46,960 nt of DNA from Octopus bimaculoides (taxonomy: Eukaryota), in contig NC_068981.1 of the NCBI RefSeq assembly GCF_001194135.2, positions 72,988,149 through 73,035,108 on the forward strand. Reading direction: 5' to 3'. Below, piece by piece: positions 428 through 40,860 of this stretch (the stretch's first letter is position 1; each line of letters opens with the position of its first letter). A program made the translations under genes and the position numbers. The notes beneath the pieces are model-generated. The model made no database searches and was not told the DNA's origin. It saw only the letters and a program-made list of their open reading frames with translations.

Positions 428-428
<1 letters not shown>

Positions 429-498: not shown

Positions 499-502
<4 letters not shown>

Positions 503-2428: not shown

Positions 2429-2905
2429 ATGGAAGTATCCAAAGAGCATTTAAGGTACATAATGCTTTATGAGGACAAAAAAGGAAACTCTGCAGCCGAA
2501 ATGACTTGAAACATACACTCAGTTTATGGGAAAGAATGCTTGAATGAAAGAACTTGCAGAAGATGGTNNNNNNNNNNGCTTGAATGAAAGAACTTGCAGA
2601 AGATGGTTTGCAAAATTCAGAAGTGGAGATTTCAGCCTTGAAGATGAAGATGATAAGCCCTTTGAAGCATTACTTGAAGAAAATCCTTCATTATCAGCTG
2701 AAGAATTGGCAATAAAGCTTAGTTCAAACCATACAACTATTCATTATCATCTTCAACAACTTGGAAAGGTTCCTAAACTTGGAAAATAGGTGGGGGACAT
2801 AACTTTCTCAAGCTGGGATGAGGTTGAAACTGATATTTCAGAGTTCTTTGCTTTGAAACCGAAAGCGTTTTACATAGTTGGGAGTAAAAAGCTTGTAAAT
2901 AGATT
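2429..2905 (+). mobile_element. Degenerate, internally deleted mariner transposase
   Basis: MEVSKEHLRYIMLY...ERTCRRWFAKFRSGDFSLED (HTH region) with an in-frame stop, followed by a C-terminal-like EFFALKPKAFY segment. Confidence 0.85.
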
Positions 2906-4327: not shown

Positions 4328-4377
4328 GTCAGTATGCTTTTATATATGCATGCATATAATAATGATAATAATAATCC

Positions 4378-4580
4378 TTTCTACTATAGGCACAAGGTCT
4401 GAAATTTGGGAGAGGGTCTATTACATTAACCCCAGTGTTCAACTGATACTTATTTAATCACCCATAGAAGGATGAAAGACAAAGTTGACTTTGTAGGTAT
4501 TTGAACTCAGAACTTAAACCCAGAAGAAATACTGCTAAGCATTTTGTTTGGTGTGCTTATGATTCTGCCAGTTTGCTGTT
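4378..4580 (-). mobile_element. tRNA-derived SINE (GATAAAATAAGTACCAG-type core), head abutting (AAT)n
   Basis: Homologous to copies at about 2040-2240, 3660-3880, 8885-9110, 27855-28030 and the 43.1-46.4 kb cluster. Has a B-box-like GAGTTCAAAT. Confidence 0.7.
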
Positions 4581-4586
4581 TTAATA

Positions 4587-4630
<44 letters not shown>

Positions 4631-4894
4631 CGGGATGGGTTACTCGACCTGAAGAAAATTCTAACTGGGCCCCACCTGCGAGGTCATGCGCTGTTTATCT
4701 TGATATGAGATCTCCATGTCGCGCACATATGGTTGTGATGCATGTGCCTGGTGTACCCTTGTCAGACGGGTAGTCATGATGGGTATAATGGGCTTCGTAT
4801 ATTTTACCCCAGTGTCACTTTGATGGCATGCACTGCTCTCTCACTCAATAATAGTAATGATGATGATGATGATAACAACAACAACAACAATAAA

Positions 4895-5075
4895 AATAAT
4901 CATTGTGTTTGGACAGCAATGGTGCATGGCAGTGAAATGTGGACCTTGAATGCAGAAGACTAATGAAAGCTAGTAAGAAATGGGGAAAGAATGTTCCAGT
5001 ATATGTATCATATTAGTGAGCATGAATGACAGGGTAGAAGTGATCAGGGAGAAAAATTAGGTATGATTAGAATTT
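4895..5075 (+). mobile_element. RTE-clade LINE remnant
   Basis: VWTAMVHGSEMWTLNAED*..RNGERMFQYM resembles the RTE AMLYGSETW...RNEMRMLRWM region. Truncated by a mariner insertion. Confidence 0.55.
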
Positions 5076-5086
5076 TATGTAATGTA

Positions 5087-5525
5087 TTGGGTCATCCCAT
5101 AAAAAATGTGGTTTTTCAATTGCATGAACTGAAAGTCAGAGGGGGACGGGATAAACTACCTGCATCAACTTGCTATAAAAGCAAGTAGTAATTTTATCTT
5201 GTTCTTATACTTAGTGCAAGTTTTGAAGAGTTATTTTTTCAAAGCTATAAATGGAAGTGACAAAGGAACGTGTTTGTTATATTTTGCTTTATGGGTTCAA
5301 TAAAGGCAGCAATGAAACGGAAAGTGCAAAGAGTATTAATGCAGTATATGGGGTTCAGACAATAAGTGTAAACCAGTGTCATTGGTGGTTCCAGAAATTC
5401 CAAGCCAGAAACTACAGCCTAGAAGACAAAACTCATCCTGGAAGATCTGTAGAGTTTGAGGATGATGTTCTGCAAACCCTGGTGGAACAAAATCCCATCG
5501 TAGCTGTTGATGAACTATTATCAAT
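5087..5525 (+). mobile_element. Mariner element 5' part (TIR + transposase N-terminus)
   Basis: TA|TTGGGTCATCCCATAAAAAATG terminus. ORF MEVTKERVCYILLYGFNKG...QCHWWFQKFQARNYSLEDKTHPGRSVEFEDDVLQTLVEQNP. Confidence 0.85.
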
Positions 5526-6556
5526 CATGGAGGAAATAACAATTGATATTGATTGGCAATATCAAGAGCTGCAGGAAATCTGCCTGCTCATATTGAGTTA
5601 AGAGTAGTGATAGATACTGAGATCTTATGTACTTGTGTATGTGTGTGTCTGTGTAAATGCATGCATGCATGTGTACATACATACATGCATACAGACAGAC
5701 AGAGTTTAGATTAGTTCAAATATGTTTGGGATATATTTGACCTATAAAAAGGCATCTTCTCTTCAGTTTGCCACAGAGAAACAAATTCTTTCTTTTAAGC
5801 AAAAGATGTTAAAAAATATCAAAATCAGTTCAAATTGCCCCCTATGGATAAGCATTTCAGACATTTTTAGCTCCTCAGTACCAGATACCAAGTGGGGCAA
5901 CTAACTGAAAGACTTAGCTTCCTTATAGGAAATTAGTAAAACTTATTTACTAATTGTGTGTTTCAGCCATCAGTCCATAGGAGGCTCTGTGAACTGACTC
6001 TGGTATTTTTAATGCCTTTTGCCTAAAGCAAGAATTTTTTTCCGTAGCAAACCATAATGAAAATGGCCTCTTTACAAATCAAATATATATATATATATAT
6101 ATTTTTATATTATTAATAAAATTATTAACAATATTCTTAGGAAATCAATATTCAAATTTCTGAAAGATGTATGTTTTATATGACACAATAATCATTTTGA
6201 AACCAAATCAAATATATTCCAAACATATTTGAACTGATCTAAAGTTTGTTTACTTTACACAACCATGTTCTGTTCATATATCTTGTTCTGACCTGGTGTC
6301 TGAAGTATGCAATTGTTGAATAATTTTTATTGATTTTTAAAGCAATGGCACTTCTAAATGTAATGGAATTTAGTTCCTCATTAAGTGATGATTATCATGT
6401 AAAGTACAAAAAGAGTAAAAACAAAAACAAAGAAGAAAAATATAAAAAACCATAAGCTTAGGGCTAGGTATACAATATATATATATTTTTTTAATATTCC
6501 ATTGTAGTGTGTGAATCTATACAAATATATATGTATGTATTCTGATTTTTTTAAAG

Positions 6557-6798
6557 ACCATTTCTGCTATACATTGGTTTCCATGATCCTCATCGCTGTG
6601 GCCATACCCATCCTCAATTTGGTGCTTTCTGTGAAAAATTTGGAGATGGAATCACAAAGGGAAGTGGAATTATCCCTGACTGGAAACCGATACACTATGA
6701 CCCTAGTGAAGTAATAGTGCCGTACTTTATACCCGATACACCTGCAGCCCGAGCTGATATAGCTGCACAGTATACAACTATTAGTCGACTCGATCAAG
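6557..6798 (+). CDS. SGSH: Sulfamidase exon
   Basis: ttaaag| and |gtaagc, 242 nt. Encodes [31 protein letters not shown]...[42 protein letters not shown]. Confidence 0.97.
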
Positions 6799-8011
6799 GT
6801 AAGCAAACTTTTAATGTAATGAATGATTTTAAATGCCTTTGTAATTTACAAAGCTTTACAAGTCTTACTTCACTGAAGCTCTTTACTCAATGTGGAGCAT
6901 TGGCTATCGATGACTTTTCTCTACTGTTCTCAGTCTGGACTGTCTTTTCTGCTTCTCACCATTTGGATCTCTGCTTTCTTTTGGATTTTGCTGCACTATG
7001 TCATGTTTCCCTGGGGAAAGGCCTTCCTCTCCCTGGTGTTATTGGTTTTCAATTGCCATTGATGCTTCTGTAACTTTGCTTTTTTCTAGCTAGGGGTCTT
7101 TGTAAACTGGAAAGAACTGGTCCATATGCCTAATTACCTAACTTTGAAGTTATTCCTTGCATTGAGCTGTAAATAATTAGAATGAGATGACACATCACAA
7201 TTCTGTAAGCTGGAGAAATGCTCTATAATTTATTTCTCAAAGAGATATATGTAAGATATAAATTATACAGTATTTACTGTATAATTTATATCTCAAATTT
7301 GGTGGGATAGGTACTGTTACTTAGACTAACCCAGTATTCAACTGGCATTTACTTTACCAACCATGGAAATCAATCTTGGCAAGATTGTAACTCATGAGGT
7401 AAAGATACATGTTGAGTAATGAGCAAGTGTTGTGTTAGTTTTCACTCCTAAATTCTGACCATTACATGTGTGAAAATTTGAGAGCTAAGATTTGTGAGAT
7501 AAACTACATGAAACCAAAGTTTTCAAGTGGTGCCGTTGATATTCAGTTGGTTACAGGGTACACAAATGTAAATTATAAAGCTCTGTAAATCTTAAAGTTA
7601 TTAGAGTGTCATTGTCTTCGAGTAATGATCGTACACAAGAAGAATTATTGTTTACCTTCTCAAATCTTTTGGAATTATTTGAGCTCAGAAAGCTAAGAAA
7701 ACACATTTATTATGCAACAACCCTGCTGCATGGCAAATTTTGAACTCTAAAACTCATGATAGTTATTTTAGAACTAGTTATATTTGGTCATCAAAAGTAC
7801 AAAGGTTTTATTGAAAGACATAGCACAACACTAGTGACATCTTACTGAGCATTGATAAACAATATGAAGATAAATTTTCCAAGTGATGTTTTGTATGACT
7901 TACATATGTATATTTCATAATGGAACTGATTCACATTTAATTTTTCAATTGTACTTGTTCATAACAGAAATCTTCAAGTAACATAGATATTAATGTATTC
8001 AATTTACACAG

Positions 8012-8187
8012 GCATTGGGCTAATAATTAAAGAATTGAATGATGCTGGACATCTCAATGACACTCTTGTTTTGTACACATCTGATAATGGTATCCCATTT
8101 CCTAATGGCAGAACAAACCTTTATGATCCTGGTATAGCAGAGCCATTTTTGATTTCTTCACCTTTACACCATCAGAAATGGGGCCAA
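8012..8187 (+). CDS. SGSH: Sulfamidase exon
   Basis: acacag| and |gtaagt, 176 nt. Encodes [59 protein letters not shown], including the metal-binding SDNG motif. Confidence 0.97.
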
Positions 8188-9229
8188 GTAAGTTATTAAC
8201 CATTAAGTTTCCAATAACTTTGTTTTAGCCATATTTCTACTTGATATACACTGTATATGTGTTTTAATTGATTTTAAAAATAATCAAGAACCTGGAAAGA
8301 TTTGCTGAATCATCCTCCTCCTCCTCCTCCTCCTCATCATCATCATCACTTAACGTCGATTGTCCATGCTGGCATAGGTTGGATGGTTTGACCAGAGTTG
8401 GAGAGCTGCACCAGGCTCCAGTCTGATTTGGCATGGTTTCTATGGCTTGATGCTCTTCCTAATGCTAACCACTTTACAGGGTGTACTGGGTACTTTTATG
8501 TGGCAATGCAAGGATGCTTTTATGTGGAACCACACGGATACTTTTATGTGGCACTGCCATGAGTGCTTTTTACATGGTACTGGCACAGGACTCTTGCAGG
8601 TCAATCCTTACCACCAGGGGGGGGGGGCGGTCTCAACATTTCTACTGTGGAGTATGGGTCTTCTTGAGTACAAAAAATAAATAATAAATTTTCCTTAAGA
8701 TGGTATTTGGAACATAATATTATAAAAGGTTCTTATGACAGTTATGATGGATGGTCTTAATTTATATATGAAGCCTTTAAAATATGAGGTTACGTATTGT
8801 AGAAGTATGGCAGTCTCAGGCAAATTGGTAACAAAAAAAGAGTTAAATGAAATCAATGATATTATACTTAATTAAAGTTAACAAGCCTTTCTACTATAGG
8901 CACAAGTTCTGAAATTTTGTGGGAGGGAACTAATTGATTAAATCAATCTCAATGTTTAACTGGTACTTATTTCATCCCCAAAATAGATTGAAGCCAAAGT
9001 CAACTTTGGTGGAATTTAAACTCAGAACATAAAGCCAGAAAAACTGCTGCTAAGCATTTTGTCCTGCTAATGATCTGCTAATGAGCTGCCAGCTCACTAC
9101 CTTAATTAAAGTTAATAATGAAATCTATAACACTTTAATAAAACAGATTATGCTGCAGTTCAGGTGGAAAATTCAAAGTTTGAAGTCCTAATATTATTTG
9201 TCTTTGCATTTAATAGTTAAGTCGTAGCA

Positions 9230-10473: not shown

Positions 10474-10770
10474 TATACTTTATTATTAAAGCTGTAAAAA
10501 CATCACAAAAATATCACAAGATACTACCACTCAGAATTTCACCTTCCCATTTGTCAGGCAGTTGTAAGAATGGAATAAAAAATTTTATTCTATTCTTGAT
10601 CACAACTGCTCGATGAACAGGAACCTGAAACTCTGAGTGGCNNNNNNNNNNATAAAAAATTTTATTCTATTCTTGATCACAACTGCTCGATGAACAGGAA
10701 CCTGAAACTCTGAGTGGCAGTTTTTTGTAATATTTTTGTGATGTTTTTGCAGCTTTTATAATAAAGCATA
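10474..10770. mobile_element. MITE-like element with ~65-bp terminal inverted repeats
   Basis: CTTTATTATTAAAGCTGTAAAAACATCACAAAAATAT...CCACTCAGAATTTCA mirrors TGAAACTCTGAGTGG...ATATTTTTGTGATGTTTTTGCAGCTTTTATAATAAAG. The interior holds an assembly duplication around an N gap. Confidence 0.7.
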
Positions 10771-11592
10771 CCACTCTGCCTCTGGTATTTGAGTACTATT
10801 TTTTCCCACCTTGTTTCACATTTATGTGCTTACTCAGGTGTACCTATTTATCTATGAAGTATGCTAATTGAATTAACATGATTTGGTTAAGGATTCACTA
10901 CAATATTTAAACAAGCCTAGTGTTTAAACAAATATCATCCTCCTTTAATATCTGTCCCCCATGCTGACATGAGTTGACAGTTCAAGAGGTTCCAACAAGT
11001 CAGAGGGATACATTGAGCCCCAATATCTGCTTTGGTGTGGTTCCTATGGCTGGATGCCTTTTTTTTATGGCAGCAACACTATGAGGTTGCCAAGTAACTT
11101 GCAAGACAAAACAAAGCAACAGAAAATAGACTCTTCTACTGAATGGGAGTGGCATTATAGCTGGTGTTGAGAGGCCAAAGTATGATAGCAGGACAGACAT
11201 TTTGCTGTAGAGGAGATACATGGCTACTTCACATTATATAAGGGTGGGCTGGAGATAAAGAGAGATAATGTTGGTGGTAACATAGTATCAGAGTGTAGCC
11301 TTGAAGTACAAGAAGGTGAGAACAGAGATTAACTTATTGAAATGATATTTAAATGAATGGCCTCAACAACCTCACTCTACTACAACATCTGAAAGAATAT
11401 TTCACTTGTAACTTAATGCTTTATAACTTCTAAAACTAAGCACTTGAGTCAGTTAACTTTTAGAAATCTAATCAATTAACTTTTAGAAATTAGTGCTGAA
11501 GATATTCCTAATTATTTCTATATATTATATATATTCCTTTATTTCAAAAAATATATTCACATATTTCGCATTTTTATCTTTTACATTTTCAG

Positions 11593-12219
11593 ACAAGTGA
11601 CTCATTTGTTTCTCTTTTGGATATCGTACCTACTGTATTGGATTGGTTCCAGATTCCATATCCTCACTACAGGCTGTTCAGAAATCATGTCAAATTGACT
11701 GGGAAATCTCTGTTACCATTGTTACACTATAAATCTGAAAGTAATATTAATCAACACACAAAAGAAATATCAGCGGTGTATAGCAGTCACAACCTTCATG
11801 AAGTCACTATGTATTATCCTATGAGATCTGTTCGTACTTCAAATTACAAGCTGATACATAATCTCAACTACAAAATGCCATATCCTATTGACCAAGATTT
11901 CTATTTGTCTTCAACTTTTCTGGACATACTGAATCGGACAAGATCAAAGCTACCGACTGAATGGTCAAAAACTCTACACCAGTATTATTACAGGGATCAG
12001 TGGGAGCTTTATGATCTCCGGAATGATACAGCCGAGCTTGTTAATGTTGCATACAAGCCTGAGTTCAAAACTACACTAAATTCTCTAAAGAGTTTGTTAC
12101 ACCATTGGCAAAATGTGACAGCTGATCCGTGGATCTGTGGACCTGATGCTGTGCTTGAAAATAGTGGATATTATAAATACCAACCTCAATGTATGCCATT
12201 GGACAATGAACTGATGTAA
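11593..12219 (+). CDS. SGSH: Sulfamidase terminal exon
   Basis: tttcag| acceptor in phase 0. Encodes TSDSFVSLLDIVPTVLDWFQIPYP...HEVTMYYPMRSVR...HNLNYKMPYPIDQDFY...WELYDL...DPWICGPD...PQCMPLDNELM*. Confidence 0.97.
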   Translation, partial: TSDSFVSLLDIVPTVLDWFQIPYPHYRLFRNHVKLTGKSLLPLLHYKSESNINQHTKEISAVYSSHNLHEVTMYYPMRSVRTSNYKLIHNLNYKMPYPIDQDFYLSSTFLDILNRTRSKLPTEWSKTLHQYYYRDQWELYDLRNDTAELVNVAYKPEFKTTLNSLKSLLHHWQNVTADPWICGPDAVLENSGYYKYQPQCMPLDNELM

Positions 12220-14262: not shown

Positions 14263-14934
14263 NNNNNNNNNNNNNNNNNNNNNNNNNNNNNNNNNNNNNN
14301 NNNNNNNNNNNNNNNNNNNNNNNNNNNNNNNNNNNNNNNNNNNNNNNNNNNNNNNNNNNNNNNNNNNNNNNNNNNNNNNNNNNNNNNNNNNNNNNNNNNN
14401 NNNNNNNNNNNNNNNNNNNNNNNNNNNNNNNNNNNNNNNNNNNNNNNNNNNNNNNNNNNNNNNNNNNNNNNNNNNNNNNNNNNNNNNNNNNNNNNNNNNN
14501 NNNNNNNNNNNNNNNNNNNNNNNNNNNNNNNNNNNNNNNNNNNNNNNNNNNNNNNNNNNNNNNNNNNNNNNNNNNNNNNNNNNNNNNNNNNNNNNNNNNN
14601 NNNNNNNNNNNNNNNNNNNNNNNNNNNNNNNNNNNNNNNNNNNNNNNNNNNNNNNNNNNNNNNNNNNNNNNNNNNNNNNNNNNNNNNNNNNNNNNNNNNN
14701 NNNNNNNNNNNNNNNNNNNNNNNNNNNNNNNNNNNNNNNNNNNNNNNNNNNNNNNNNNNNNNNNNNNNNNNNNNNNNNNNNNNNNNNNNNNNNNNNNNNN
14801 NNNNNNNNNNNNNNNNNNNNNNNNNNNNNNNNNNNNNNNNNNNNNNNNNNNNNNNNNNNNNNNNNNNNNNNNNNNNNNNNNNNNNNNNNNNNNNNNNNNN
14901 NNNNNNNNNNNNNNNNNNNNNNNNNNNNNNNNNN
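14263..14934. other. Assembly gap (N run); other large gaps at 17674-18118, 33288-33383, 34064-34213, 40440-40647
   Basis: Seen directly. Confidence 1.
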
Positions 14935-15814: not shown

Positions 15815-15831
15815 ATGCAGGCGTTTATTAC
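15815..15831 (+). CDS. LIG1: DNA ligase 1, first coding micro-exon (17 nt CDS, MQAFI-T)
   Basis: AAAC ATG CAG GCG TTT ATT AC|gtatgt. The phase-2 join to 19133 gives MQAFITSYF, a PIP box, matching the human MQRSI-M|SFF layout as recalled. Confidence 0.8.
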
Positions 15832-17673: not shown

Positions 17674-19132
17674 NNNNNNNNNNNNNNNNNNNNNNNNNNN
17701 NNNNNNNNNNNNNNNNNNNNNNNNNNNNNNNNNNNNNNNNNNNNNNNNNNNNNNNNNNNNNNNNNNNNNNNNNNNNNNNNNNNNNNNNNNNNNNNNNNNN
17801 NNNNNNNNNNNNNNNNNNNNNNNNNNNNNNNNNNNNNNNNNNNNNNNNNNNNNNNNNNNNNNNNNNNNNNNNNNNNNNNNNNNNNNNNNNNNNNNNNNNN
17901 NNNNNNNNNNNNNNNNNNNNNNNNNNNNNNNNNNNNNNNNNNNNNNNNNNNNNNNNNNNNNNNNNNNNNNNNNNNNNNNNNNNNNNNNNNNNNNNNNNNN
18001 NNNNNNNNNNNNNNNNNNNNNNNNNNNNNNNNNNNNNNNNNNNNNNNNNNNNNNNNNNNNNNNNNNNNNNNNNNNNNNNNNNNNNNNNNNNNNNNNNNNN
18101 NNNNNNNNNNNNNNNNNNATGACATCTAGTTTTAGTATATAGGTAAATTCATTTTAAGTTTGGAACTTCTGCTGCTCAGTATTCGAGATGAAGTGTGGGC
18201 AAAAAGGGGTTTGAATAGGTTGTTGTTCTGTGAAAAGTAAAATGTTTTTAGGGGCTTGGTTATGTAAGATATTAAAAATGAGAAGAACAGAGGTGGTGAA
18301 TTTTCAGGTGTAGATGAGCAGACACAGCTTGTTGCTATAGTTGATTATATTGATGAATATTGTCTTTCACTGTGATGCTTTTGGATGCAGTGTGGAATAT
18401 CTGTGACTACTAAGAACACTGCTCTTGTGAAAATTATTGGTATTCTAAACTTTGATATTAAGGATTCAGAACAGTATGCATGTCATATCAACATCAAGAG
18501 GAGGAAGTTTCTACACAGCCTTTTTGACCTGCTACAAATAGTAAGCATTCTGTCATTGCTGGTGCTATGGAAAAAGCACCCAGTACACTCTGTAAAGTGG
18601 TTGGTCTTAGGAAAGACATCCAGCTGTAGAAACCAAGCTAAAACAGACAATGGAACCTGGTATGGTTCTCAGCTTTACCATCTCCTGTCAAACTGCCCAA
18701 CCCATGCCAGCATGGAAAAAAGATGTTAAATAATGAAAATGATGATCAGTTTTTTTTTTGCATGTTTTCATTGCACAACAGAGCACACAGCTCTGTACAC
18801 CTTGGATATGCACTGTCTTCTTGTGTTTTCTGTTCTATTGACAGTACTCTTCACAATATGGGTGCAATGCATAGTCATACTATCTTATATGTCATGTATA
18901 TATGTTTAATTATGTATGTCAACATTAAAATTATTCCTGACATGTTATATTATTGAGACTGTTTCCGTCTTCAGTCCCTATATTTTCATTATCTCTATTT
19001 CCAGATCTTTATATTTGGTTAACTTATAGCAGTAATGGCATCTGTACACAAACTATTGCATGTATTTTTGCTTTATCTCTGCAATACACAATGTTACTAA
19101 CATTTTCATGTGTTCTTACACTATTGTTACAG

Positions 19133-19234
19133 GTCCTATTTTAACGCATCACAAAACACTCTACGTGCATCTGATACTGACAGCAGTAAAACAAGCAATG
19201 CAGATAAATCTAAAGAAAAAAAAGATTCCAAGAG
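19133..19234 (+). CDS. LIG1: DNA ligase 1 exon 2
   Basis: ttacag| and |gtcaga, phase 2/2. Encodes SYFNASQNTLRASDTDSSKTSNADKSKEKKDSK. Confidence 0.8.
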
Positions 19235-21093: not shown

Positions 21094-21373
21094 GGAAGTT
21101 AAAAAAGAACAGCGAAAAGTAAACAACTGCTCAGACAGTCCTATCCAGAAAAAGAAGAGAAGAACTAAGTGTATTATAGAGAGCGATGAAGAAGAAGCTG
21201 GTGATGGCAGTGGAAACGAATCTCCTAAGAAAGAAGATGCTGTGGACAATAATGGTGATGTTTATGACAATGATAAAGGAAAATCTTCTGATAGTGGTGA
21301 TGACGATGATGATGATGATGATGATGATAAGTCAGAATCTGAAACAGCAGAGACCAAAGGACTGAAAGAAAAG
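21094..21373 (+). CDS. LIG1: DNA ligase 1 exon 3
   Basis: ctgcag| and |gtaaga, 280 nt open. SDSPIQKKKRRTKCIIESDEEE resembles human [23 protein letters not shown]. Contains poly-Asp (D10). Confidence 0.85.
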
Positions 21374-22825
21374 GTAAGATATGACTTTTCATATATGTGT
21401 GTGTATGTATATGCATGCATGTATGTAGATAAGTATTTCTGTATTCTGTACCTCTTCACTTATATATAACTTCTTGTAACTTGAGGATATGTTCCAACAC
21501 CCCTCATTCTCTCTTGTTTCTCCTTTTCCTTTTACAGTTGGGGTTGCTATGTATCTCCTCTACAGCAAAATGTCTCTTTCTATCACTCTTATCATACTTC
21601 TATCCTTTCATCACCTGGCACAAAGCCACCTCCCTCACCACTCCTTCCTTATCAGTTGAGATGTCATGTCTTGCAAGTTACTTGGTGACCTTATTGCTGC
21701 TACTGTCACATAAGAAGCATTCACTTCACTCTGTGAAATGGTTGGCATTAGGAAGAGCATCTAACCATAGAAACCATACTGAAGCAAGGCTTCTGGCTTG
21801 CCAGCTCGTGTCAAACTGCCCAACCCATGTCAGCTTGGAAAATGGCTGTTAAATGATTGTATCCATCCATCCATCCATAATACATCTTTGTATCTGTTTT
21901 TCTGTGTATGTGTATCATCATCATCGTTTACCGTCCGCTTTCCATGCTAGCATGGGTTGGACAATTTGACTGAGGACTGGTGAACCAGATGGCTACACCA
22001 GGCTCCAAAGATTACTACCATCTTGACATACTGGACAGTTTTGATGGTGTGCCACTGGGATAACATTGGTGAATCACGGCACCTACTCTGTTATAACAAG
22101 CATCTGAAGTTTTGGACTTACTATTGTAAGCTTATATAATTATCATAAATACAACATCATCCTCTGTAAACATTATGCTCTCATGTATCCCTTCATGCAA
22201 CGTCACTCTCCTTACATATAGCTTGACTGGTCTAATATTTCCATTTCAATGAAGTACGAAACCATTTGTTGGTCACATTATCATCATCATCAACATTTAA
22301 TGTCTGTTTTCCATGCTCACTTGGGTTGGACAGCTTGACAAGACCTGGCAAGACTAGAGGTTGCACCAATTTCCATAGTCTGGCTTTGGTTTCTATGGCT
22401 GGATACCCTTCCTAATACCAACCACTTCACTGAGTGTACTGGGTGCTTATTACATGACACCATGACACCATCATCAGTGCTTTTTACATGGCACCAGCAC
22501 CCACACCAATGCTTTTTACATGGCATCTTGGTTTTAGGATCTCAATTCTGTTGTGGTGGGCAGGTCTCCTCAAGTACTGCAATGTGCCACATATCTTAAT
22601 CCTCTGTTATCCCCTTCCTAAGGTTCAACATTTTGAAATCAGCCTTCAATACTTTGTATTTTGCAGTAACAACTATTTAATTTGTTTCCACCATTTCTTT
22701 TTGTAACTGCTATATTTTTTAACCTATAGCTCTGTAATTATCTTACCTTGTCATGTAGCAATCAACCTCTCTTTAGTGGACTTTTGGATCATATTGCACT
22801 TCATTTTCATTTTCATCTTTTGTAG

Positions 22826-23006
22826 CCTAAAAAGTCTAATAAAGATAACAAAATCAAAACAGAAGACTCTAGTTCTCCAGAAAGTTCACCGTCACCAAAG
22901 GAGACATCATCGGAGACTAGCCCTTCTGCTAAGGCTGGTACTAGTATTGATTCTACAACCATCACACCAAAAAAATCTCCATTTGGTATTCCTAAAAGAA
23001 AAACAG
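22826..23006 (+). CDS. LIG1: DNA ligase 1 exon 4
   Basis: ttgtag| and |gtacag, 181 nt. Ends SPFGIPKRKT (human SPSGIPKRRT). Confidence 0.9.
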
Positions 23007-23962
23007 GTACAGATATTTATCTGACTTACATTGTTGTTGTTCTCATCATCATCATTCATAATCATTGTTGCTGTTGGCATTACCATTATCATCATCACCA
23101 TCACTTAATATCTATCTTTCATGCTAGCATTGATTAGATGGTTAGACAGAACCTGATGTTGTCAGCTGATGGCATCATGTTCTAGTGTCATCTCCAATGT
23201 CATCTTATTAAATAATTTTATGACTTAAAAGTAGTTGGAAAAGAAGCCTTTGCAGCTACAAAGTACATCACTTTATTATTGTAGGTAGCTCTCCCAGAAA
23301 GTCAGCTGCCTTCTCCTAACCGTTACATAAACTGAAACATACAGCATGTTTGGGCTAAATTTGATGAATTTTTGTTTCCTTTTTTTAGGAACAGCTTAAT
23401 GTATTGGTGAACAGTCATCAGTGTTGGAAAGCATAAAGATTAAAGTTGAGATAAAACTAACTGACATGGAGGACTTTAAGCCACCTGAATATTGAAAAGA
23501 ATTACCTGTCTTATGTTGATTTGTGCAGGGTATCAAAATACTGATATCATGACTGATGCTCAGTGTTTTGTGAACACTAACGGTTGTAAGATATGACATG
23601 GACATCATAAAACCAAACTCCCCCAAATTGAGGTGGCTTTTGGGTGTGCCTCCAGTGAAGATGATGTTGTGTTGCTCACAGCTTTGCCCCAACCACCACC
23701 ATTGCTTGACAACTGGTGTTGGTTTGTGTACATTCCTGTAACTTAGCAGTTCAACATAAGGAACTGATAGAATAAGAGTCAGGCTTCAAAAAAAAAATAA
23801 GTACTGGGGATTGATTTGTTCAACTAAAACCCTTCAAGGTAGCGCCCCAGCATGCCCACTGTTGAACGATTGAAATGAATGAAAAATAAATGAAATTGTG
23901 TTGTGTAAACAATGATAGCATATACAGATATATATGTTTATATCTATCCATCTATCTTTCAG

Positions 23963-24138
23963 CTCGGAAAACAGTTGGACCTAATTCTACTCCAAAACGT
24001 AAAATTATTGGAGAAGAGTCATCAAGTTCTTGTAATGGAACTTCCAAGCGACAAAAAGTTGAGCCATTAGAAGAGGATGTGGATTCCACATCCAGTGATC
24101 CAAAGAAGAACCAAGAAAATTTGACAACAGACAAAGAT
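23963..24138 (+). CDS. LIG1: DNA ligase 1 exon 5
   Basis: tttcag| and |gtaagt, 176 nt. Encodes ARKTVGPNSTPKRKIIGEESSSSCNGTSKRQKVEPLEEDVDSTSSDPKKNQENLTTDKD. Confidence 0.9.
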
Positions 24139-26231
24139 GTAAGTGTTTCACAATATATTTCTTAGATCTGTGAAACTATATCTGCTTTGCCCTTGCTAGA
24201 TATCATTTTCCAGTAGCATTGGCTGTTGCTGGAGTATCTATTTCCATTCGCTACATACCTAGTGCATTATATGTAGCGCCTCCTGCCTAATTGATCCTGT
24301 TGATCCACTCTGTAAGGTGGTCAGTGTTAGGAAGAGCATCTAGCCATAAAAACCCTATAAAAACAGATAGTGAAGCTTGGTGCAGTCTTCTGTTTGGCCA
24401 GTCCCTGTCAAATTGTCTAATCCATGCCAGCTTGGAAAGCAGATGTTAAATTATGATGTTTTTATTTAGGGAGGGATTCTACTTCCTTCATTCATTGCCA
24501 GTGGTCCACAACACTTTTGAAATGATGTGTGTGTGTTCAACAACCACGGAAATGGCCATATTGTTAAGAAGTTTACATTACCATACTGTGGTTCCAGGTT
24601 CATTTTTACTGGGCAAAACTTTGGTTAAATGTTTTTGTTTACCATAGCCTTTGGTTGACCTAAGATTTGTGAGTGAAATTGGGAAGGTGACAACTGTGTG
24701 TAAGTTAGTTAGATGAACTGTATATGGACATGATCTGTTGCTCTGTTTAATACTTCTGTCTGGCCCTTGTGTTTTAATGGAATCCACTGTGTTGCAAACA
24801 TTCAGACCAGATTAGAAGATAACTTGATATCTTAATACGGTATTTATTACTGCAGTAACTCACCAGTCACTATTTCTTTCCACTTTTTATCTCGCCACTC
24901 TCAGAGGTCCTGCATCTTTTAACTAAGCCATATTGCATTAATTTAATCACCGTCATCATTAAGTCTGCTTTATTCATATTAACATGACTTGGAGAAGACA
25001 TAATGCAACTGGATACCCTTCCTCTCGCTAACAAGGTACTTGTGCTATTTCAGTTTTCTTTGCACGTTGAGCTGCTGCTCATAGCAAAGGTAGCATTACT
25101 TTCCATGGTTCCCAAATATTTCATCTCTGAATAGTTACTTGCCTATGTAAAGCATAAATATGTTTAAACCAAACTACTACACTCACATAAGGTGTGAAAC
25201 AGTACTTATGAAGTGCATATGGCTATAACCCTTGATGGACAAACTTTTTCAGTAATACTCTCCGAGTTCTGGCCTAAAGTTTTGTGCTCTGTATCTCTTC
25301 TATCACTATTACAATTTTCTGAAAAGTAGAAGCAGACATGCCTGGGTGGTTCAGAAGTTCTCTTCTCAACCATGTGGTTTTGGATTCTGTAATACTATGC
25401 AGCACCGCAGTACTTTGGTTATGGTTTCTTTTCCAGCCATAGCACCGTACTGACCAATCTCATGTGAGGGAATTTGGTAAACAGAAACTACAGGAAGCCT
25501 CTTGTATATAAACATACATGTATGATTATATATTTATGTGTGTAAATGTGCATATATTCTGCAAATGTTTCTAAGCAGTACTTAGTGACAAGTGCTCTGG
25601 GCTTTTGAAGACGTTTGCAGTAAAAAAAATCCCTCACTTGAAAAAACTTATGGATTGACGAGAGGAAAGACATCCTGCTTCAAATAACTCTCTGTCCAAA
25701 CCTATGCTAGCATGGAAAAAAATGATGTTAATCAAATGTATGAGCCATATGCAGTTAAATATATCCAATGTATCCACTACTCTTTGTTGCTCAAATCAAT
25801 AGAAGACATATGCTTTTTGTTATGTTGTTTCTTCAGTGCAAGAACAATTTAGTAATTTAGGGAGGTTTGCTAATTTGTATATGTATGCAAGCTGCTGAAA
25901 CAGAGATTTCATTGTCCATTCTCATTGTCATAAGACTAGCCATTGATTAATATTTATAAAAATACCTGCCATTTGTTTGGTGTTATGATTGGTATCCAGT
26001 TGTAGAAACCAATGCTAAAGCAGACATTGCAGCTTGGTACAGTCCTCCAGCTCCTCAGATCTTGTCAAACTAGCCATTACATGCCAGCTGGGAAGACAAA
26101 TGTTAAATGATGATGATGATGATATATAGCTTTGTAGAGTAAAGCAAATAGAGTTTACTTTTCCCCTGTCCTAGAACACCGGGCTTGTACATTTTGCATA
26201 GATTTAACTGTTGTTTATTGTTTCATTTCAG

Positions 26232-26271
26232 AAAAAAAAAAAAAAATCTGAAGAAAAGCAATCCCAACAAG
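26232..26271 (+). CDS. LIG1: DNA ligase 1 probable exon 6 (40-nt micro-exon)
   Basis: tttcatttcag| and |gtaaat, phase 0/1, fits both neighbours. Encodes KKKKKSEEKQSQQ. Confidence 0.65.
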
Positions 26272-28820: not shown

Positions 28821-28993
28821 ACTACACTCTCTGAGTGGTTGGCATTAGGAAGGGCATCCAGCTGTAGAAACTCTGCCAAATTAGATTGGAGCCTGGTGTT
28901 GCCATCCGGTTTCACCAGTCCTCAGTCAAATCGTCCAACCCATGCTAGCATGGAAAGCGGACGTTAAACGATGATGATGATGATGATGATGAT
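28821..28993 (+). mobile_element. Young 5'-truncated SINE-like copy next to (TA)n
   Basis: Two substitutions versus 54-228. (GAT)n tail. Confidence 0.8.
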
Positions 28994-31137: not shown

Positions 31138-32245
31138 GTTTACAATATCTGTACAATACTTCAAACACTCTATACATATGTGTGTGTGTGTGTGCATATA
31201 TATATTATGTTATGCACACACTCATTAATTTTTTACCTCTGTATATATTTACATGTATAAATTTGTAATGTGTGTGTGTGTGTGTGTGTGTGTGGTGGCA
31301 GCTGATGAAGGAAATGCTCTCTATGTGGCCTGTGTATTTTCTGTACTCTGTTTATCATTTTGTCCACGTTTTTTTGCAACGTCCTGTACCTAGATATACA
31401 TCTATATATACATGTAGATGTAGGTATGTATATACATGTACGTATATANNNNNNNNNNCACACACACACACACACACATATTTACACATAGATTTGTAAT
31501 ATGTGTGTGTTACTGCTTCCTAGCCTTGACATAGCGTGATGGTTATAAACAATTATTACCATTATGGAAACATGTCTGGTCATGATGAAATATTACTTTA
31601 CCTGGAAACAGGTGAGGGCTGGCAACAAGAAGGGCATCCAGTTGTAGAAAATCTGCCTCAACAAATTCTGTCTGACCCATGCTAGCATGGGAAAGTGTAT
31701 ATTAAATCAATGATGATAAAAACTGTGCTTGTTATTTCTAAGTTACTCTTTTGCTCTTTTGATTGTTTCAGTCATTTGACTGTGGCCATGGTGGAGCACC
31801 GCCTTCAGTCGTGCAAATCGACTCCAAGACTTATTTTTTGTAAGCCTAGTACTTATTCTATCGGTCTCTTTTGCCGNNNNNNNNNNGACTGAACCCGGAA
31901 CCATGTGGTTGGTAAGCAAACTACTTACCACACAGCCACTCCTACGCCTGTTTTTTTTTTTTAAACTTTCACCCTTGTTTTATTTCCAGCGGGGTTTTAC
32001 CTTGCAAGTCTTGGAGGGCCTATGAAACCATAGGTACAGCCCCTTTCATTCCAGATTCAGTCCCACAACATGGTACCTTGTGCAAGTATCTTGTTCTATA
32101 GACCTGGGCCAACCAAAAAAGTCAACATTAAGACAAATGTTGAGGATGATATTACAAGCTTTTATATATAACTTGTATTTGTTTCAAGATTAATTGTTAA
32201 ATGATTTCTTTCAAATATTTTCATTATTATCTTTTTCATCGAAAG

Positions 32246-32323
32246 ACACAAATGAATCTTCAGTGAAAAAAGAAGTTAAGAAGTCTAAAGATTCTCCTGA
32301 AGTGAAAGTTGCCTCTATATTTG
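32246..32323 (+). CDS. LIG1: DNA ligase 1 exon 7
   Basis: cgaaag| and |gtaagt, phase 1/1. Encodes DTNESSVKKEVKKSKDSPEVKVASIF-G, comparable to human TLSSFF|T as recalled. Confidence 0.7.
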
Positions 32324-32822: not shown

Positions 32823-32940
32823 GTAACATCAAATCAAAGAAAACACCTTCAAAACCAGAATCTGAAAAAAAGAAGGAGCCTGCTAAATCAACGAAATCAA
32901 CCACAGAAATAAAGGAAGAAAAATCTGAAGATGTACAGTG
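32823..32940 (+). CDS. LIG1: DNA ligase 1 exon 8 (last LIG1 exon found in window)
   Basis: tattag| and |gtaaga, phase 1/2. Encodes GNIKSKKTPSKPESEKKKEPAKSTKSTTEIKEEKSEDVQ. No downstream YNP..YHP..DACW exon was found in the remaining 14 kb. Confidence 0.75.
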
Positions 32941-33427
32941 GTAAGAGTTTGCTTATTTTCTATTGTGTTTTTTGTTGTTATGTCCATATATCAAGGACAT
33001 TGATTCCAAATTTGACATGTTTGTGCTGGTAGTAGTGGCAGCAGAAGAAGAGTTAGTTTTCTTCATTCACTATTTCCATTTTACATCTATGTTTCTATGC
33101 TTGCATAAATAGGACAGATCTTTGTTGCTGTATCTCGACTCTTGTTGGTGTCTTTTGTCATCTGTGGAGGCGCAATGGCCCAGTGGTTAGGGCAGCGGAC
33201 TCGCGGTCCTAGGATCGCGGTTTCGAGACCCAGACTGGGCGTTGTGAGTGTTTATTGAGTGAAAACACCTAAAGCTCCACGAGGCTCNNNNNNNNNNNNN
33301 NNNNNNNNNNNNNNNNNNNNNNNNNNNNNNNNNNNNNNNNNNNNNNNNNNNNNNNNNNNNNNNNNNNNNNNNNNNNNNNNNNNAAAACCATTCAATTGAC
33401 GACAGTAAACTTACTGGACATGTTTAT

Positions 33428-33600
33428 ATCATCATCATCATCATCATCATCATCATCGTTTAACGTCCGCTTTCCATGCTAGCATGGGTTGGACGACTTG
33501 ACTGAGGACTGGTGAAACCGGATGGCAACACCAGGCTCCAATCTAAATTTGGCAGAGTTTCTACAGCTGGATGCCCTTCCTAACGCCAACCACTCAGAGA
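33428..33600 (-). mobile_element. Young 5'-truncated SINE-like copy next to (TA)n
   Basis: About 3 differences versus 62-228. Confidence 0.8.
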
Positions 33601-33694
33601 ATACATATATATATATATATATATTATTTCACTCTTTTACTACTGTTCTGATTTAGAAAAGAACCAAGAGACAAAGGAGGAAATTCCAACTCAC

Positions 33695-33857
33695 TGCAGC
33701 ACAAGCAGATGATTCAGTCCTCTTTGAGTAACATTACCGGCACTGGAGATCTCCAGGTGTTCCAAGGAATCTTTCACGTAGTGTAGCAAGTGCAAAGCAT
33801 CATCGTCCAGGTAATTACAGTTCTTTAGAATCAGTTTCTTCAAATATTTCAATCCTT
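33695..33857 (-). CDS. ATP5S: ATP synthase subunit s / factor B (ATP5S, DMAC2L)-like LRR exon, isolated
   Basis: ttatttcag| and |gtgagt, 163 nt. EGLKYLKKLILKNCNYLDDDALHLLHYVKDSLEHLEISSAGNVTQRGLNHL aligns with human EGLEHVEKIRLCKCHYIEDDCLLRL...ILEMEIISCGNITDKGIIAL as recalled. Confidence 0.75.
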
Positions 33858-36456
33858 CTGAAATAATATAATACATACATATGTGTATATATATATATAT
33901 ATATATATTACAACATTTTATATAGAGTTACCCTATAGAGCCTTGTGGGTGCAAAACCTTGGGTACCTCCATATAAGATTTTGTTGTAATAATTATTGTT
34001 TTGTTTTATACAGTGTGCTTCATTCTGATATATGTTTTTTTTATTAACTATATATAATATAAANNNNNNNNNNNNNNNNNNNNNNNNNNNNNNNNNNNNN
34101 NNNNNNNNNNNNNNNNNNNNNNNNNNNNNNNNNNNNNNNNNNNNNNNNNNNNNNNNNNNNNNNNNNNNNNNNNNNNNNNNNNNNNNNNNNNNNNNNNNNN
34201 NNNNNNNNNNNNNGGCTCAACACAGCCAAGTATCTAGAGCAGGGGTGGGGAAAATTTCCAATGGAAACGGTCGGCGGGCGGACCACAAGTTCTAACTCTT
34301 ATATCTGTGTCAATATTATATATATATCTATATATAATTCGATTAACTTTATTTTTTTTGAAAACTTTCTCTTGAGTAAGGTACATAACTCTGCTTGTCT
34401 TTATTTGCCTGGTCTGTTAATAAGCAGTGTTCATATTTCCAATTCAAGTTATCTGTTGGAAAGAAGATTCAGCTATGGAAAAAAAGTACTCCAAAAATAA
34501 ATAAATGTCCAAATTCTCAAAAAGTCTTCACCCATCTTCTTCCTTGTTTGGGAAAATGAATGTAGAATAATAAGAAAATAAAACAATTTTTTCAGTTTTT
34601 TTTTTCTTACAGATTTTATTTAAGAAACTTGGGACCATCTACAAAAAAATATGTCTACTTGATAACAATGCTACTAATTTGTTTTTGAGATTAGAGCTAA
34701 TAAGTTTGGGCCATTCTTCAGCTGTTAAAAGTACTTCACATGTAAATTATAAAGGGGATGGATTCCTTATAAAACTATTTGTAAAATGGTAAATGGCTAT
34801 CTCTTAATGTACTCAGTAGATACAAAAACAGTTATTGATTTTCTTTTCTTTACTCAACATAACCTTTTGACAGGAATTAGTATGATTTTTAAAATGTTTT
34901 AAATTTTTCTCTTTGTGTTATTACTTCACCAAGGAAAAAAAACTGATGCTTTCACAAACATTGAAAAGAAAGAAAAAATTTTAAAAAAAAATTACAAAAA
35001 AAAATCTCATAATGGAGCTTAGATGTTTTCTACAAAACCATTTGGACGAAAATAGATCACTATCTTATACAACCATTGGGATGAAAATAGCACAACTATT
35101 TGTATAAAAGCACATTATACCTTACACAACCGTTATAAGTAAAAGTTGCTTTCCTATTTTTTCTTTTTCACAACCATGAAAATTTTACAGTTTATAGAAA
35201 TGTAAGTCAGTTGCTTTCATGACTTTTTGGGAAAATGATGGTGTGTGAAAATGGCTTAGACTGTGAAAATTGTTGGTTTTGTTGTTATCTAAACAGATAA
35301 AAAACTTCAGGCTTTTAAAACATAGAATGTGGAGTGGAAGTCCTATAATGTGATCCAGCTACATGTTTTCTTTTTTGTTGTTAGCATTTCTAAAGTTATT
35401 TCAAAGATTTCAGTCTCTTACAAGAGTTTGTTGATATGTTTTAGTGTTATAATCATTTGTCTGCATCTTCTGTTCCAAGTGTCCTTTTTTTGTGGGGTTT
35501 ATAGACAGTTAAGTAATATTTAAATATAATGTGGAATGATCCCATGAAAGACTGCTACATAGATTTAGAAGATTTCCTTCACTAAATTATATTAAAAGAC
35601 AAATATTACGAAAATAAAAAAAGATATTCAGAAGACAAAACAAAACACGACATACAAATTTCATAAATTGTCTGGTGTTTCTACCTGAAAATAGTTTTGA
35701 AGTATCACCACAGAAAGGCTATATCCATAGCTTTTAGATGCTTAGGATGTAGATGTATTTCTTGGCAATAATCTGTGTTGAGAGTGTTGTGTGTTCTTGT
35801 CATTTAGTGTGGTTTGAAAATGAATATGTTGCATTGACACACACACAGTGGTTTATCTAAATCTAAATGTGGGGTTTCATATTCTGTTTTCATCAGATCA
35901 AGAAATATGTTGGATAGATTTAGACTTGTTTCATTTATGATTATTGCTAAAGAATAGAAGTCAGTGAAGTGATGTCATTTGGTTTTGTTTTTTTTTGTTT
36001 TGTTTTTCGCTCTCATTTCGATTATTATGTAATTAGCATAAATTTGTTTGATTTTTTGTTGTTTTTTTTTTACCCATAGATTTATTTCTTGTTACCTATT
36101 CTTGAAGTGATTGTAAGATTGACTGCTTTTATCTTTTTTTATTTTTTTACTAGATTGTTTTTAAATAACAAAATCTATTTGATCCTGTATCAGCAATATC
36201 TATTTTATAAATTTATAAAAGTTGACTAAATACAATAAGTCCTACTTCAAAAATCTTTTTGACTTATGGAATATTTTCTCCTTAGAAATTCCAACTATAT
36301 TATCATGTCACTCTGCCAAGAAAGTATGGATATTTCTTATTTGATAAAGTTGGCTTTTTCCCTATTGTTAATGAATCTACCATTTTTAAACTGTCAAAGA
36401 CTTGGCTATTTCTCACATATTAGTACTGCAGGCATGACGATAATATTTGTACATGT

Positions 36457-37016
36457 TTAATTCTCAAAGATTAAGAACCCTGAGAATGTTGAGTAATCGT
36501 TGAGCAGTGCTGAGTCTTTACTGAGTTGAATCCAGACATGGTCATCAACATTAAGATTAAGAATTATGGTGTTGCTGCTTGAACCAAATCCTGCTCGGCC
36601 ATCTCCATGCAGTGGAAGCTGGTGCTGGTTATTCACCATCAGCCAGGCAAAGGCATCGATTTTATTTTGACCCATAATATGTGCTGTGAAAAGGTAAGTC
36701 CCATTGAGCTGACAGACGAAATGGGATGTATAAATGTCAAAATTGTCACCAATATTTACAAAGATGTTGTTGAAAGTCACTATTGTGTCTTGTAAAACCC
36801 GTCCCAGCTTGGTTGTTCTGCTGGCAGAAAATGCAATTCGTTTACTAGGTTTACTTGAAAGACCCTTTTCCCCTCTATCTCCCTTGTACCCTGGATATCC
36901 TCGGGGTCCCATAGCTCCTTTAATTCCTTCACCTCCATTTGTGCCGATTTCTCCTTTTTGTCCTTTCCTCCCACGGCTTCCTTTCTCTCCTGTTGGTCCC
37001 AATGCTCCACTTTCAC
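36457..37016 (-). CDS. Collagen + C1q-domain protein, exon 2 (collagen C-half + gC1q domain + stop)
   Basis: tttcag| acceptor in phase 1. Gly-X-Y run, then IAFSASR...VTFNNIFVNIGDNFDIYTSHFVCQLNGTYLFTAH...SSSNTIILNLNVDDHVWIQL...YSTFSGFLIFEN*. Confidence 0.95.
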
Positions 37017-39461: not shown

Positions 39462-39699
39462 CTTTTAATCCAAATGGGCCTTGTGGTCCATGTTCTCCTC
39501 TCTCTCCTTTTTGACCTTCAATTCCCATAGCACCTTGCAGACCTGGTATTCCAGGTACTCCTGACGGACCTGTCTGGCCAACACAGCACTTACACTCCTT
39601 GTCCTGAAGATATGCATGGGTACCTGAAGCAACCACCTGAATGTGCATAGCCAATAGCCATGTCAGACTGGAAAGCTTCAGTCCAAATGTGTGTTCCAT
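39462..39699 (-). CDS. Collagen + C1q-domain protein, first coding exon (signal peptide, CKCC, collagen N-half)
   Basis: MEHTFGLKLSSLTWLLAMHIQVVASGTHAYLQDKECKCCVGQTGPSGVPGIPG...GPFGLK-G|gtaaat, 238 nt, phase 1. An upstream acceptor (tttacag| near 39731) implies a non-coding first exon. Confidence 0.92.
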
Positions 39700-40189: not shown

Positions 40190-40860
40190 TTTTACTCTTT
40201 TACTTGTTTCAGTCATTTGACTGCGGCCATGCTGGAGCACCGCCTTTAGTCGAGCAAATCGACCCCAGGACTTGTTCTTTGTAAGCCTAGTACTTATTCT
40301 ATCGGTCTCTTTTGCCGAACCGCTAAGTTACGGGGACGTAAGCACACCACCATCAATTGTCAAGCGATGTTGGGGGGACAAACACAGACACACAAGCATA
40401 CACCCCCACCACATATATATATATATATATATATATATANNNNNNNNNNNNNNNNNNNNNNNNNNNNNNNNNNNNNNNNNNNNNNNNNNNNNNNNNNNNN
40501 NNNNNNNNNNNNNNNNNNNNNNNNNNNNNNNNNNNNNNNNNNNNNNNNNNNNNNNNNNNNNNNNNNNNNNNNNNNNNNNNNNNNNNNNNNNNNNNNNNNN
40601 NNNNNNNNNNNNNNNNNNNNNNNNNNNNNNNNNNNNNNNNNNNNNNNTACTTACCACCACACAGCCACTCCTGATATATATATATATATACACATATATA
40701 CGACAGGCTTCTTTCAGTTTCCGTCTGCCAAATCTACTCACAAGGCTTTGGTCGGCCCGAGGCTATAGTAGAAGACACTTGCCCAATATGCCACGCAGTG
40801 GGAATGAACCCAGAACCATGTGGTTGGTAAGCAAGCTACTTACCATACAGCCACTCCTGT
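40190..40860 (-). mobile_element. tRNA-derived SINE(s) with internal microsatellite broken by a gap
   Basis: Body at 40190-40385, microsatellite and gap, then head(s) at about 40650-40860. Confidence 0.8.

Follow-up and report, generated by a model that had tools for sequence, protein, structure and literature searches.

Results and discussion

Does the DNA ligase LIG1 of an invertebrate carry the histone H3-like motif with which mammalian LIG1 binds UHRF1, and how old is this motif? The question is raised by a stretch of 46,960 nucleotides from Octopus bimaculoides (contig NC_068981.1 of assembly GCF_001194135.2, positions 72,988,149 to 73,035,108 of the forward strand), which we analyzed over its whole length and refer to as the window. 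A sequence-only reading had pointed at two exons of a presumed LIG1 gene which, once spliced, give a close relative of the human element. In our assessment the window holds the 5' part of LIG1 with a motif homologous to that of mammals and a priapulid, working as the mammalian UHRF1-docking element and as a nuclear localization signal (NLS); we put the probability of this reading at roughly 0.6.

In human LIG1 the motif occupies residues 118-130, IPKRRTARKQLPK (PMC7585203; the sequence is also present in database protein P0001). Residue K126 is methylated in mammals by G9a/GLP (PMC7585203, PMC10464304; both citing Ferry et al. 2017 and Kori et al. 2019), and the tandem Tudor domain of UHRF1 holds K126me2/3 in a cage of F152, Y188 and Y191 and R121 in the acidic pocket of D142 (PMC10464304). 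Binding by this domain is in the order of 9 nM for LIG1 K126me2/3, against approximately 1600 nM for H3K9me3 (PMC10464304; PMC7585203).

A TARK motif split over two exons

The segments that make up the motif in the window are as follows:

22826..23006, + strand: LIG1 exon 4, a Ser/Pro/Thr-rich tail ending in ...TPKKSPFGIPKRKT + G; phase 1 end
22985-23006, + strand: first half of the motif, in exon 4; R191 is the R121 equivalent
23007..23962, + strand: intron 4, 956 nt, gtacag...tttcag, phase 1, within the Ala codon of T-A-R-K
23963..24138, + strand: LIG1 exon 5, (A)RKTVGPNSTPKRKIIGEESSSSCNGTSKRQKVEPLEE...TTDKD, then the second basic patch PKRK
23963-23979, + strand: second half of the motif, in exon 5; K196 is the K126 equivalent, with Thr197 at +1

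Exon 4 ends at 23006 with ...GGT ATT CCT AAA AGA AAA ACA G, followed by gtacag, and exon 5 starts at 23963 with CT CGG AAA ACA GTT GGA, preceded by ...ctatctttcag up to 23962. The intron is canonical (GT/AG) at both ends and its acceptor has a pyrimidine tract. Splicing 22826-23006 to 23963-24138 keeps the reading frame and yields SPFGIPKRKTARKTVG, which reads ...TPKKSPFGIPKRKTARKTVGPNSTPKRK... across the join (that is, ...TPKKSPFGIPKRKTARKTVGPNSTPKRKIIGEE...). The junction 23006|23963, predicted from the sequence and the conserved intron, is canonical and in frame, and it is supported by two bona fide LIG1 genes that have this intron too, with codon and phase unchanged (see below). None of the unspliced single reading frames contains the motif, as the sequence-only reading had already stated; the best unspliced match to the human protein is just SPFGIPKRKTGTDIYLT. 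On re-reading the window, the coordinates, sequence and exon 4/5 junction given in that reading were all found to be right, and its numbering of the exons as 4 and 5 agrees with the five-exon 5' model that we rebuilt.

The spliced segment S184-PFGIPKRKTARKTVG-199 is the orthologue of residues 115-130 of human LIG1, and the motif itself that of residues 118-130 (PMC7585203), so that the human IPKRRTARKQ region was correctly proposed as its counterpart. The equivalents of R121, T123, A124, R125 and K126 are all retained, also as proposed. As in human and mouse, the motif follows the PCNA-interacting protein (PIP) box and an SDSP/acidic patch; 10 of 13 residues are identical to human over GIPKR.TARK and the same phase-1 Ala-codon intron is present. 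Differences concern position 122 (K in the window, R in human), positions +1 to +3 after the lysine (T-V-G against Q-L-P) and the second basic patch, which lies five residues farther off in the window. In mammals the exon coding for ARKQLPKR... (as in the rhinoceros gene, L001) has phase 1 at both ends and can be skipped in frame, whereas exon 5 of the window measures 176 nt and its skipping would break the frame. Three predicted mammalian isoforms (P0012, P0032 and P0137) do skip the ARK exon (IPKRRT|EAET..., RRTAKPP...), giving a predicted product in which the PIP box is kept and the methyl-lysine is gone.

The similarity was scored as an ungapped BLOSUM62 comparison of the window 17-mer SPFGIPKRKTARKTVGP with human SPSGIPKRRTARKQLPK. 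The observed score is 54, against a mean of 17.1 (standard deviation 4.1, maximum 47) for composition-preserving shuffles of the 252-residue N-terminus and a mean of 17.3 (maximum 44) for shuffles of the K/R/S/T-rich exons 4-5; in both cases 0 out of 20,000 shuffles reach 54. TARK is present in 0.2% of the exon 4-5 shuffles.

Identity of the gene

Three further exons precede the two that carry the motif:

15815..15831, + strand: LIG1 coding exon 1, ATG CAG GCG TTT ATT AC|gtatgt; 17 nt of coding sequence, MQAFI plus 2 nt, ending within the PIP box
19133..19234, + strand: LIG1 exon 2, which finishes the PIP box (..T SYF), then NASQNTLRASDTDSSKTSNADKSKEKKDSK(R); phase 2 end
21094..21373, + strand: LIG1 exon 3, EVKKEQRKVNNCSDSPIQKKKRRTKCIIESDEEEAGD... 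then a poly-Asp tract; phase 0 end

Exons 1 and 2, when assembled, give the N-terminus MQAFITSYF with a canonical QxxIxxYF PIP box at residues 2-9 (MQRSIMSFF in human, MAQRSITSFF in Priapulus). Exon 3 codes for SDSPIQKKKRRTKCIIESDEEEAGD, an SDSP / basic / (V/I)IESD.EEE patch, of CK2 type in its acidic part (IIESDEEE in the window), that matches the human patch and has a Priapulus counterpart in VSPVK..RKRRRVIESDSEEE (VSPVK...RKRRRVIESDSEEEG). The order of the landmarks, from PIP box through SDSP/acidic patch to TARK motif, is the same as in human LIG1; the match of the last collinear landmark, a second FF element (VASIF in the window), is weak. When the window N-terminus is compared by BLAST with 152 LIG1-family representatives, it matches solely LIG1 N-termini and solely at the motif (ray, cavefish, priapulid, lamprey, frog and one mammalian isoform), with an exon 5 alignment that reaches the PKRK and SKRQKVE of frog, lamprey and ray LIG1. 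The sequence around the motif has otherwise diverged among LIG1s, and the earlier description of diverged, low-complexity flanks is borne out in the alignment of the N-termini. The human LIG1 sequence used here is 100% identical to P0001, and the database search with the full-length human protein returned mammalian matches only.

Intron positions were compared with LIG1 of rhinoceros (L001) and of Priapulus caudatus (L002), both of which have the Pfam domains DNA_ligase_A_N, _M and _C. The first four coding introns agree in position and phase (2, 2, 0, 1) between the three genes:

Intron 1, phase 2, within the PIP box: rhinoceros ...ATC AT|gt, Priapulus ...ATC AC|gt, window ...ATT AC|gt
Intron 2, phase 2: Lys codon in rhinoceros, Ser codon in Priapulus, Arg codon in the window
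Intron 3, phase 0: rhinoceros, Priapulus and window
Intron 4, phase 1, Ala codon of T-A-R-K, rhinoceros: ACA G|gtaagg...ccag|CT CGG AAG
Intron 4, phase 1, Ala codon, Priapulus: ACC G|gtaggt...gcag|CG AGG AAG
Intron 4, phase 1, Ala codon, window: ACA G|gtacag...tcag|CT CGG AAA

Intron 1 follows coding nucleotide 17 in the window as well as in rhinoceros (ATG CAG CGA AGT ATC AT|gt). In Priapulus it interrupts the same PIP-box codon in the same phase, but after nucleotide 20 (ATG GCA CAA AGA TCT ATC AC|gt) because of one extra codon (MAQ...). The shared intron positions are the decisive evidence: they identify the gene as LIG1 and show that the motif is homologous rather than convergent. Judged from its sequence, the gene is the 5' part of a LIG1 orthologue in an AT-rich, repeat-rich invertebrate genome, and the identification as LIG1 that had been made earlier is supported by the N-terminal PIP box, the collinear landmarks and the four conserved intron positions. 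In Priapulus (L002) an annotated gene of 132 residues without Pfam match (4357-6927, - strand) lies inside the TARK-splitting intron, on the strand opposite to LIG1, and an SMG1-like gene adjoins the 5' end of LIG1.

Distribution and age of the motif

The representatives examined were the best 150 LIG1-family matches listed, with the motif scored in 149; besides Priapulus, arthropods and a fluke these are mostly protists, plants and fungi, while molluscs other than the window, annelids, cnidarians and echinoderms fall outside the sample. The motif reads as follows:

Lamprey: VIPKRKTARKQLPKRK
Electric ray: PPRRRTARKQF
Frog: DIPKRKTARKQI
Cavefish: GIPKRRTARKHF
Priapulus caudatus, XP_014676671.1 (P0132): VPLRKTARKSF; GVPLRKTARKSF
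Arthropod LIG1s without the motif: Ischnura, Anticarsia, Timema, Trichogramma, Diaphorina and the ostracod Cyprideis

Within mammals PKR.TARKQ is found in 113 of 120 clusters, with variation confined to position 122 and a few flanking residues, and R-[KR]-T-A-R-K is unvarying in window, priapulid, lamprey, ray, frog and fish. The Priapulus protein (XP_014676671.1, VSPDGVPLRKTARKSFASRRKP; 1203 aa in total) is a protostome LIG1 with the same motif, the IESD.EEE patch and the same four introns and phases. Directly after the lysine it likewise has a hydroxyl and then a hydrophobic residue. It differs in having L instead of K at 120, V instead of I, Ser instead of Thr at +1 and a far longer acidic repeat region.

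In the comparison of N-termini that had been suggested earlier, the motif is there in the priapulid and absent from all six arthropod representatives. The fluke entry has no long N-terminus. As motif and intron are common to mammals and a priapulid, both are at least bilaterian in age and already existed in the last ancestor that protostomes and deuterostomes share. The same age applies, as a minimum, to R-[KR]-T-A-R-K and its Arg at -5, which some lineages have lost or let erode. The earlier suggestion that the motif predates vertebrates is therefore upheld by Priapulus caudatus LIG1, which carries it with the same intron. No mention of invertebrate conservation of the LIG1 motif was found in the literature searched (Ferry 2017 and Kori 2019 were outside that search).

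Likeness to histone H3 and proposed function

With residues 4-12 of the H3 tail (KQTARKSTG) the window motif shares the T-A-R-K core, a basic residue at -5, a hydroxyl residue at +1 and Gly at +3. It is closer to H3 than the human motif is, as had been noted before (TARKTVG has 5 of 7 residues in common with TARKSTG, human TARKQLP 4 of 7). Unlike H3, the motif is internal to a long disordered tail; having no free N-terminus, it makes a PHD-finger reading of the A1/R2 equivalent impossible. At -5, moreover, H3 has Lys whereas the window has Arg (R191 in IPKR-K-TARK), the equivalent of the residue that enters the Tudor acidic pocket; in human LIG1 this Arg leads to more than 100-fold tighter binding than H3 (PMC10464304).

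G9a requires an Arg before the lysine and prefers Ala before this Arg; on the other side of the lysine it favours a hydrophilic and next to it a hydrophobic residue (PMC8541646). ARK has been treated as its consensus (PMC6172828). The sequence R191-K-T-A-R-K196-T-V agrees with each of these G9a/GLP preferences, making IPKRKTARKTVGP a candidate EHMT substrate. Other histone mimics of G9a/GLP (the G9a automethylation site, ATF7IP K16, WIZ) likewise have an ARK core in a disordered part of proteins that act on chromatin or in replication (PMC6172828, PMC8541646). However, these are read by HP1, MPP8 or ankyrin repeats, whereas the motif of LIG1 selectively binds the Tudor domain of UHRF1 (PMC7585203), and the ATF7IP motif is reported to be conserved in vertebrates and not in flies, whereas that of LIG1 is found in two protostome phyla.

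If the mammalian situation holds in Octopus, the motif would function from within the disordered N-terminal tail of a ligase tethered to PCNA, as one of the short linear motifs. An EHMT (G9a/GLP) orthologue would place two or three methyl groups on K196, and UHRF1, and through it DNMT1, would be brought to lagging-strand DNA that has just been ligated. These basic residues and the PKRK downstream of them would most likely double as NLS. O. bimaculoides is reported to have DNMT1, gene-body methylation and one UHRF1 (Ocbimv22021185m) that contains tandem Tudor, PHD and SRA domains (PMC9476566), and Priapulus has all DNMTs and predicted methylation (PMC8821070). Given these components and the agreement with the G9a preferences, a mammalian-type function of the motif in Octopus is by analogy the most likely one. 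In addition, an NLS could do without T and A, which are nevertheless kept, and this argues for H3-type recognition.

Several observations weigh against this reading. Searches by tblastn with human and Priapulus LIG1 find no ligase catalytic exon in the window, so if the gene is LIG1 its catalytic core must lie outside it. Likewise, no protein with window exons 3-5 or the 49-aa motif segment is present in a large protein database, where not a single entry has as many as three 5-mers in common with exons 4-5. For these reasons the LIG1 identity rests on the N-terminus and the intron positions. To this the six arthropod LIG1s without the motif should be added. Several motif-less arthropod lineages keep DNMT1, which would mean that the link is not obligatory. 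Furthermore, the LIG1-UHRF1 contact in mammals is reported to be dispensable for the maintenance of bulk DNA methylation (PMC7585203; PMC9614205). Finally, the motif overlaps an NLS, a point overlooked in the sequence-only reading, and this overlap could be the cause of part of the conservation.

Alternative explanations

The most serious alternative takes the latter point to its end: the segment might be only an NLS or replication-foci targeting patch, with basic residues selected for importin and a likeness to H3K9 that has no consequence for readers or writers. In human LIG1, residues 119-131 were mapped as NLS and 111-179 as the second half of the replication-foci targeting sequence (PMC2141708). 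The window segment, with its K/R clusters PKRKTARK ... PKRK, is located at this very position and within this half; KRK..RK followed by PKRK thirteen residues on resembles a bipartite NLS, and the independence of mammalian bulk methylation from the UHRF1 contact fits as well. An NLS, however, tolerates exchange of K and R and needs no Thr-Ala, whereas T-A-R-K is unvarying from mammals to priapulid and window while the neighbouring basic position is variable (R, K, L or I). The Arg at -5 does not vary either, and residues 120-131 were shown by Cardoso et al. to be neither strictly required nor sufficient for nuclear import (PMC2141708). We therefore regard a purely NLS-type patch as unlikely, though it deserves to be taken seriously, and a dual role as NLS and reader-docking site seems most probable. 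The bipartite targeting sequence of LIG1 (1-28 and 111-179) is retained in the window in both halves, as PIP box and basic motif. Having seen nothing similar in yeast or Drosophila, Cardoso et al. (1997) proposed that it might have arisen recently (PMC2141708); window and Priapulus instead show an old origin, with loss or divergence in the yeast and Drosophila lineages.

A more elaborate version of the docking function concerns the residue directly after the lysine. This is T followed by V in the window and S followed by F in Priapulus, i.e. a phosphorylatable residue in an R-K-[S/T]-hydrophobic context, compared to Q or H at +1 in every vertebrate sampled. Binding of UHRF1 to H3K9me is reported to tolerate phosphorylation of S10. 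With two protostome sequences at hand, a methyl/phospho switch at Thr197, as put forward earlier, is conceivable; since phosphorylation beside the lysine impairs G9a, any such switch would be likelier to act at the writer than at the reader (phosphorylation of H3 S10/T11 impairs G9a and also affects HP1 and ankyrin readers; PMC8541646, PMC5749181). One might go further and suppose that ancestral bilaterian LIG1 had a fuller H3 cassette, R-x-T-A-R-K-[S/T]-hydrophobic, gated by a kinase at +1 in the protostomes that retain it (window and Priapulus), that the gate was lost in vertebrates (Gln/His) and that the intron permits isoforms with and without the methyl-lysine. A mitotic or S-phase kinase acting on the +1 residue would then block methylation by EHMT and thereby gate the recruitment of UHRF1 to the lagging strand. 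We consider this scenario speculative and distinctly improbable.

It could also be that the motif is not made in vivo, because of another splice product or because the exons belong to a different transcript. In the donor CAG|GTACAG, position +5 is not the G of the consensus, an in-frame alternative donor at 22985|22986 would remove GIPKRKT and an in-frame alternative acceptor at 23974|23975 would remove ARKT; the predicted ARK-skipping mammalian isoforms and the missing database protein point in the same direction. Yet the 21 nt between the candidate donors code for exactly the conserved GIPKRKT, which would be unexpected of intron sequence, just as the 12 nt before the alternative acceptor code for the conserved ARKT. 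That acceptor has no pyrimidine tract, and 23006|23963 is located at the codon position and phase of rhinoceros and Priapulus LIG1, which makes failure to produce the motif very unlikely.

Chance or convergence from a K/R/S/T-rich tail can be practically dismissed in spite of the strongly low-complexity composition and the lack of a significant match in PDB sequences or the large protein database, as the shuffles never reach the observed score, the motif follows PIP box and acidic patch just as it does in human LIG1, and the intron that splits it falls at exactly the same nucleotide in three phyla, which indicates common descent. The phmmer search against PDB sequences, with the whole N-terminus and with a 35-mer, gave only a nucleophosmin acidic-tract match (E=2.2).

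Tentative downstream exons

Beyond exon 5 we propose three tentative exons:

26232..26271, + strand: tentative LIG1 exon 6, KKKKKSEEKQSQQ, 40 nt; the sole open AG..GT segment that joins the phases of exon 5 and the next exon
32246..32323, + strand: tentative LIG1 exon 7, (D)TNESSVKKEVKKSKDSPEVKVASIF(G)
32823..32940, + strand: tentative LIG1 exon 8, GNIKSKKTPSKPESEKKKEPAKSTKSTTEIKEEKSEDVQ, phase 2 end; weak match to human TPRKPAIKKKVKEEEP

The chain of exons 1-8 is translated in frame without a stop. Tentative exon 6 has no homology support. It starts with a run of 15 A (26232-26246, five Lys codons), a homopolymer that is prone to sequencing-length errors, and such an error would shift the frame of the tentative exons downstream. 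Exons 7 and 8 show a faint similarity to the SFF/PRKP region. By its sequence, exon 7 may be the counterpart of the 'SFF' element that comes second in LIG1 N-termini; the similarity is weak (rhinoceros ...PKTLSGFFS|PRKP, with an intron at the equivalent place; Priapulus RTLHSFFSG). No LIG1 exon was found within the window 3' of 32940, and 33657-33812 was ruled out as a further exon by stops in all frames.

The window contains nine assembly gaps (runs of N: 2568-2577, 10642-10651, 14263-14934, 17674-18118, 31449-31458, 31877-31886, 33288-33383, 34064-34213 and 40440-40647). Of these, 17674-18118 falls within LIG1 intron 1 and 33288-33383 just past the last tentative exon, so that small exons could be hidden in these two gaps.

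Neighbouring genes and repeats

Upstream of LIG1, on the same strand, are exons of an SGSH-like gene (N-sulphoglucosamine sulphohydrolase), and 3' of the last exon that resembles LIG1, but on the other strand, a two-exon gene for a secreted collagen-plus-C1q protein:

6555-7070, 7987-8196 and 11512-12216, + strand: SGSH-like exons; Pfam SGSH_C (E=3.8e-11) in the last exon, and 6555-7070 alone without Pfam match
36457-37016 and 39462-39699, - strand: collagen/C1q gene; Pfam C1q (8.9e-24) and Collagen (2.4e-15)
5251-5598 (+), 2544-2786 (+) and 163-621 (-): mariner/Tc1-type transposon remnants, among them one open reading frame with Mos1 HTH_48 (1.4e-13) and one DDE_3 fragment (7e-06, below the Pfam cut-off)
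18560-18730, 21700-21850, 22230-22420, 24290-24450, 28830-28970 and 33440-33600: examples of a short dispersed repeat, found on both strands

Because the ligase catalytic exons are not in the window, the collagen/C1q gene is probably nested in a large LIG1 intron. The dispersed repeat, with a translation of ...LALGRASS.RN..K.DW.. / ..HASMG/EW.., often stands beside microsatellites of the type (CAT)n or (TA)n; it has the look of a SINE-type family that fills the LIG1 introns.

Conclusions

The motif itself is a known mammalian element; what the window adds is evidence of its deep ancestry, including that of the intron within it. In mammals, the interaction between methylated LIG1 K126 and UHRF1 is very tight in vitro and seemingly dispensable for bulk methylation in cell lines, and its importance is debated. 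The retention of R-x-T-A-R-K and its splitting intron in the window, the priapulid and all vertebrates sampled implies well over half a billion years of purifying selection. As this selection acted on residues that are dispensable for an NLS, a real function is likely. Invertebrates in which gene bodies are methylated in a mosaic pattern may serve as systems in which to ask what replication-coupled recruitment of UHRF1 is for, and the six sampled arthropod LIG1s from which the motif is missing provide a basis for comparison against the retention of UHRF1 and DNMT1. In this way the link between LIG1 and UHRF1 becomes testable outside vertebrates.

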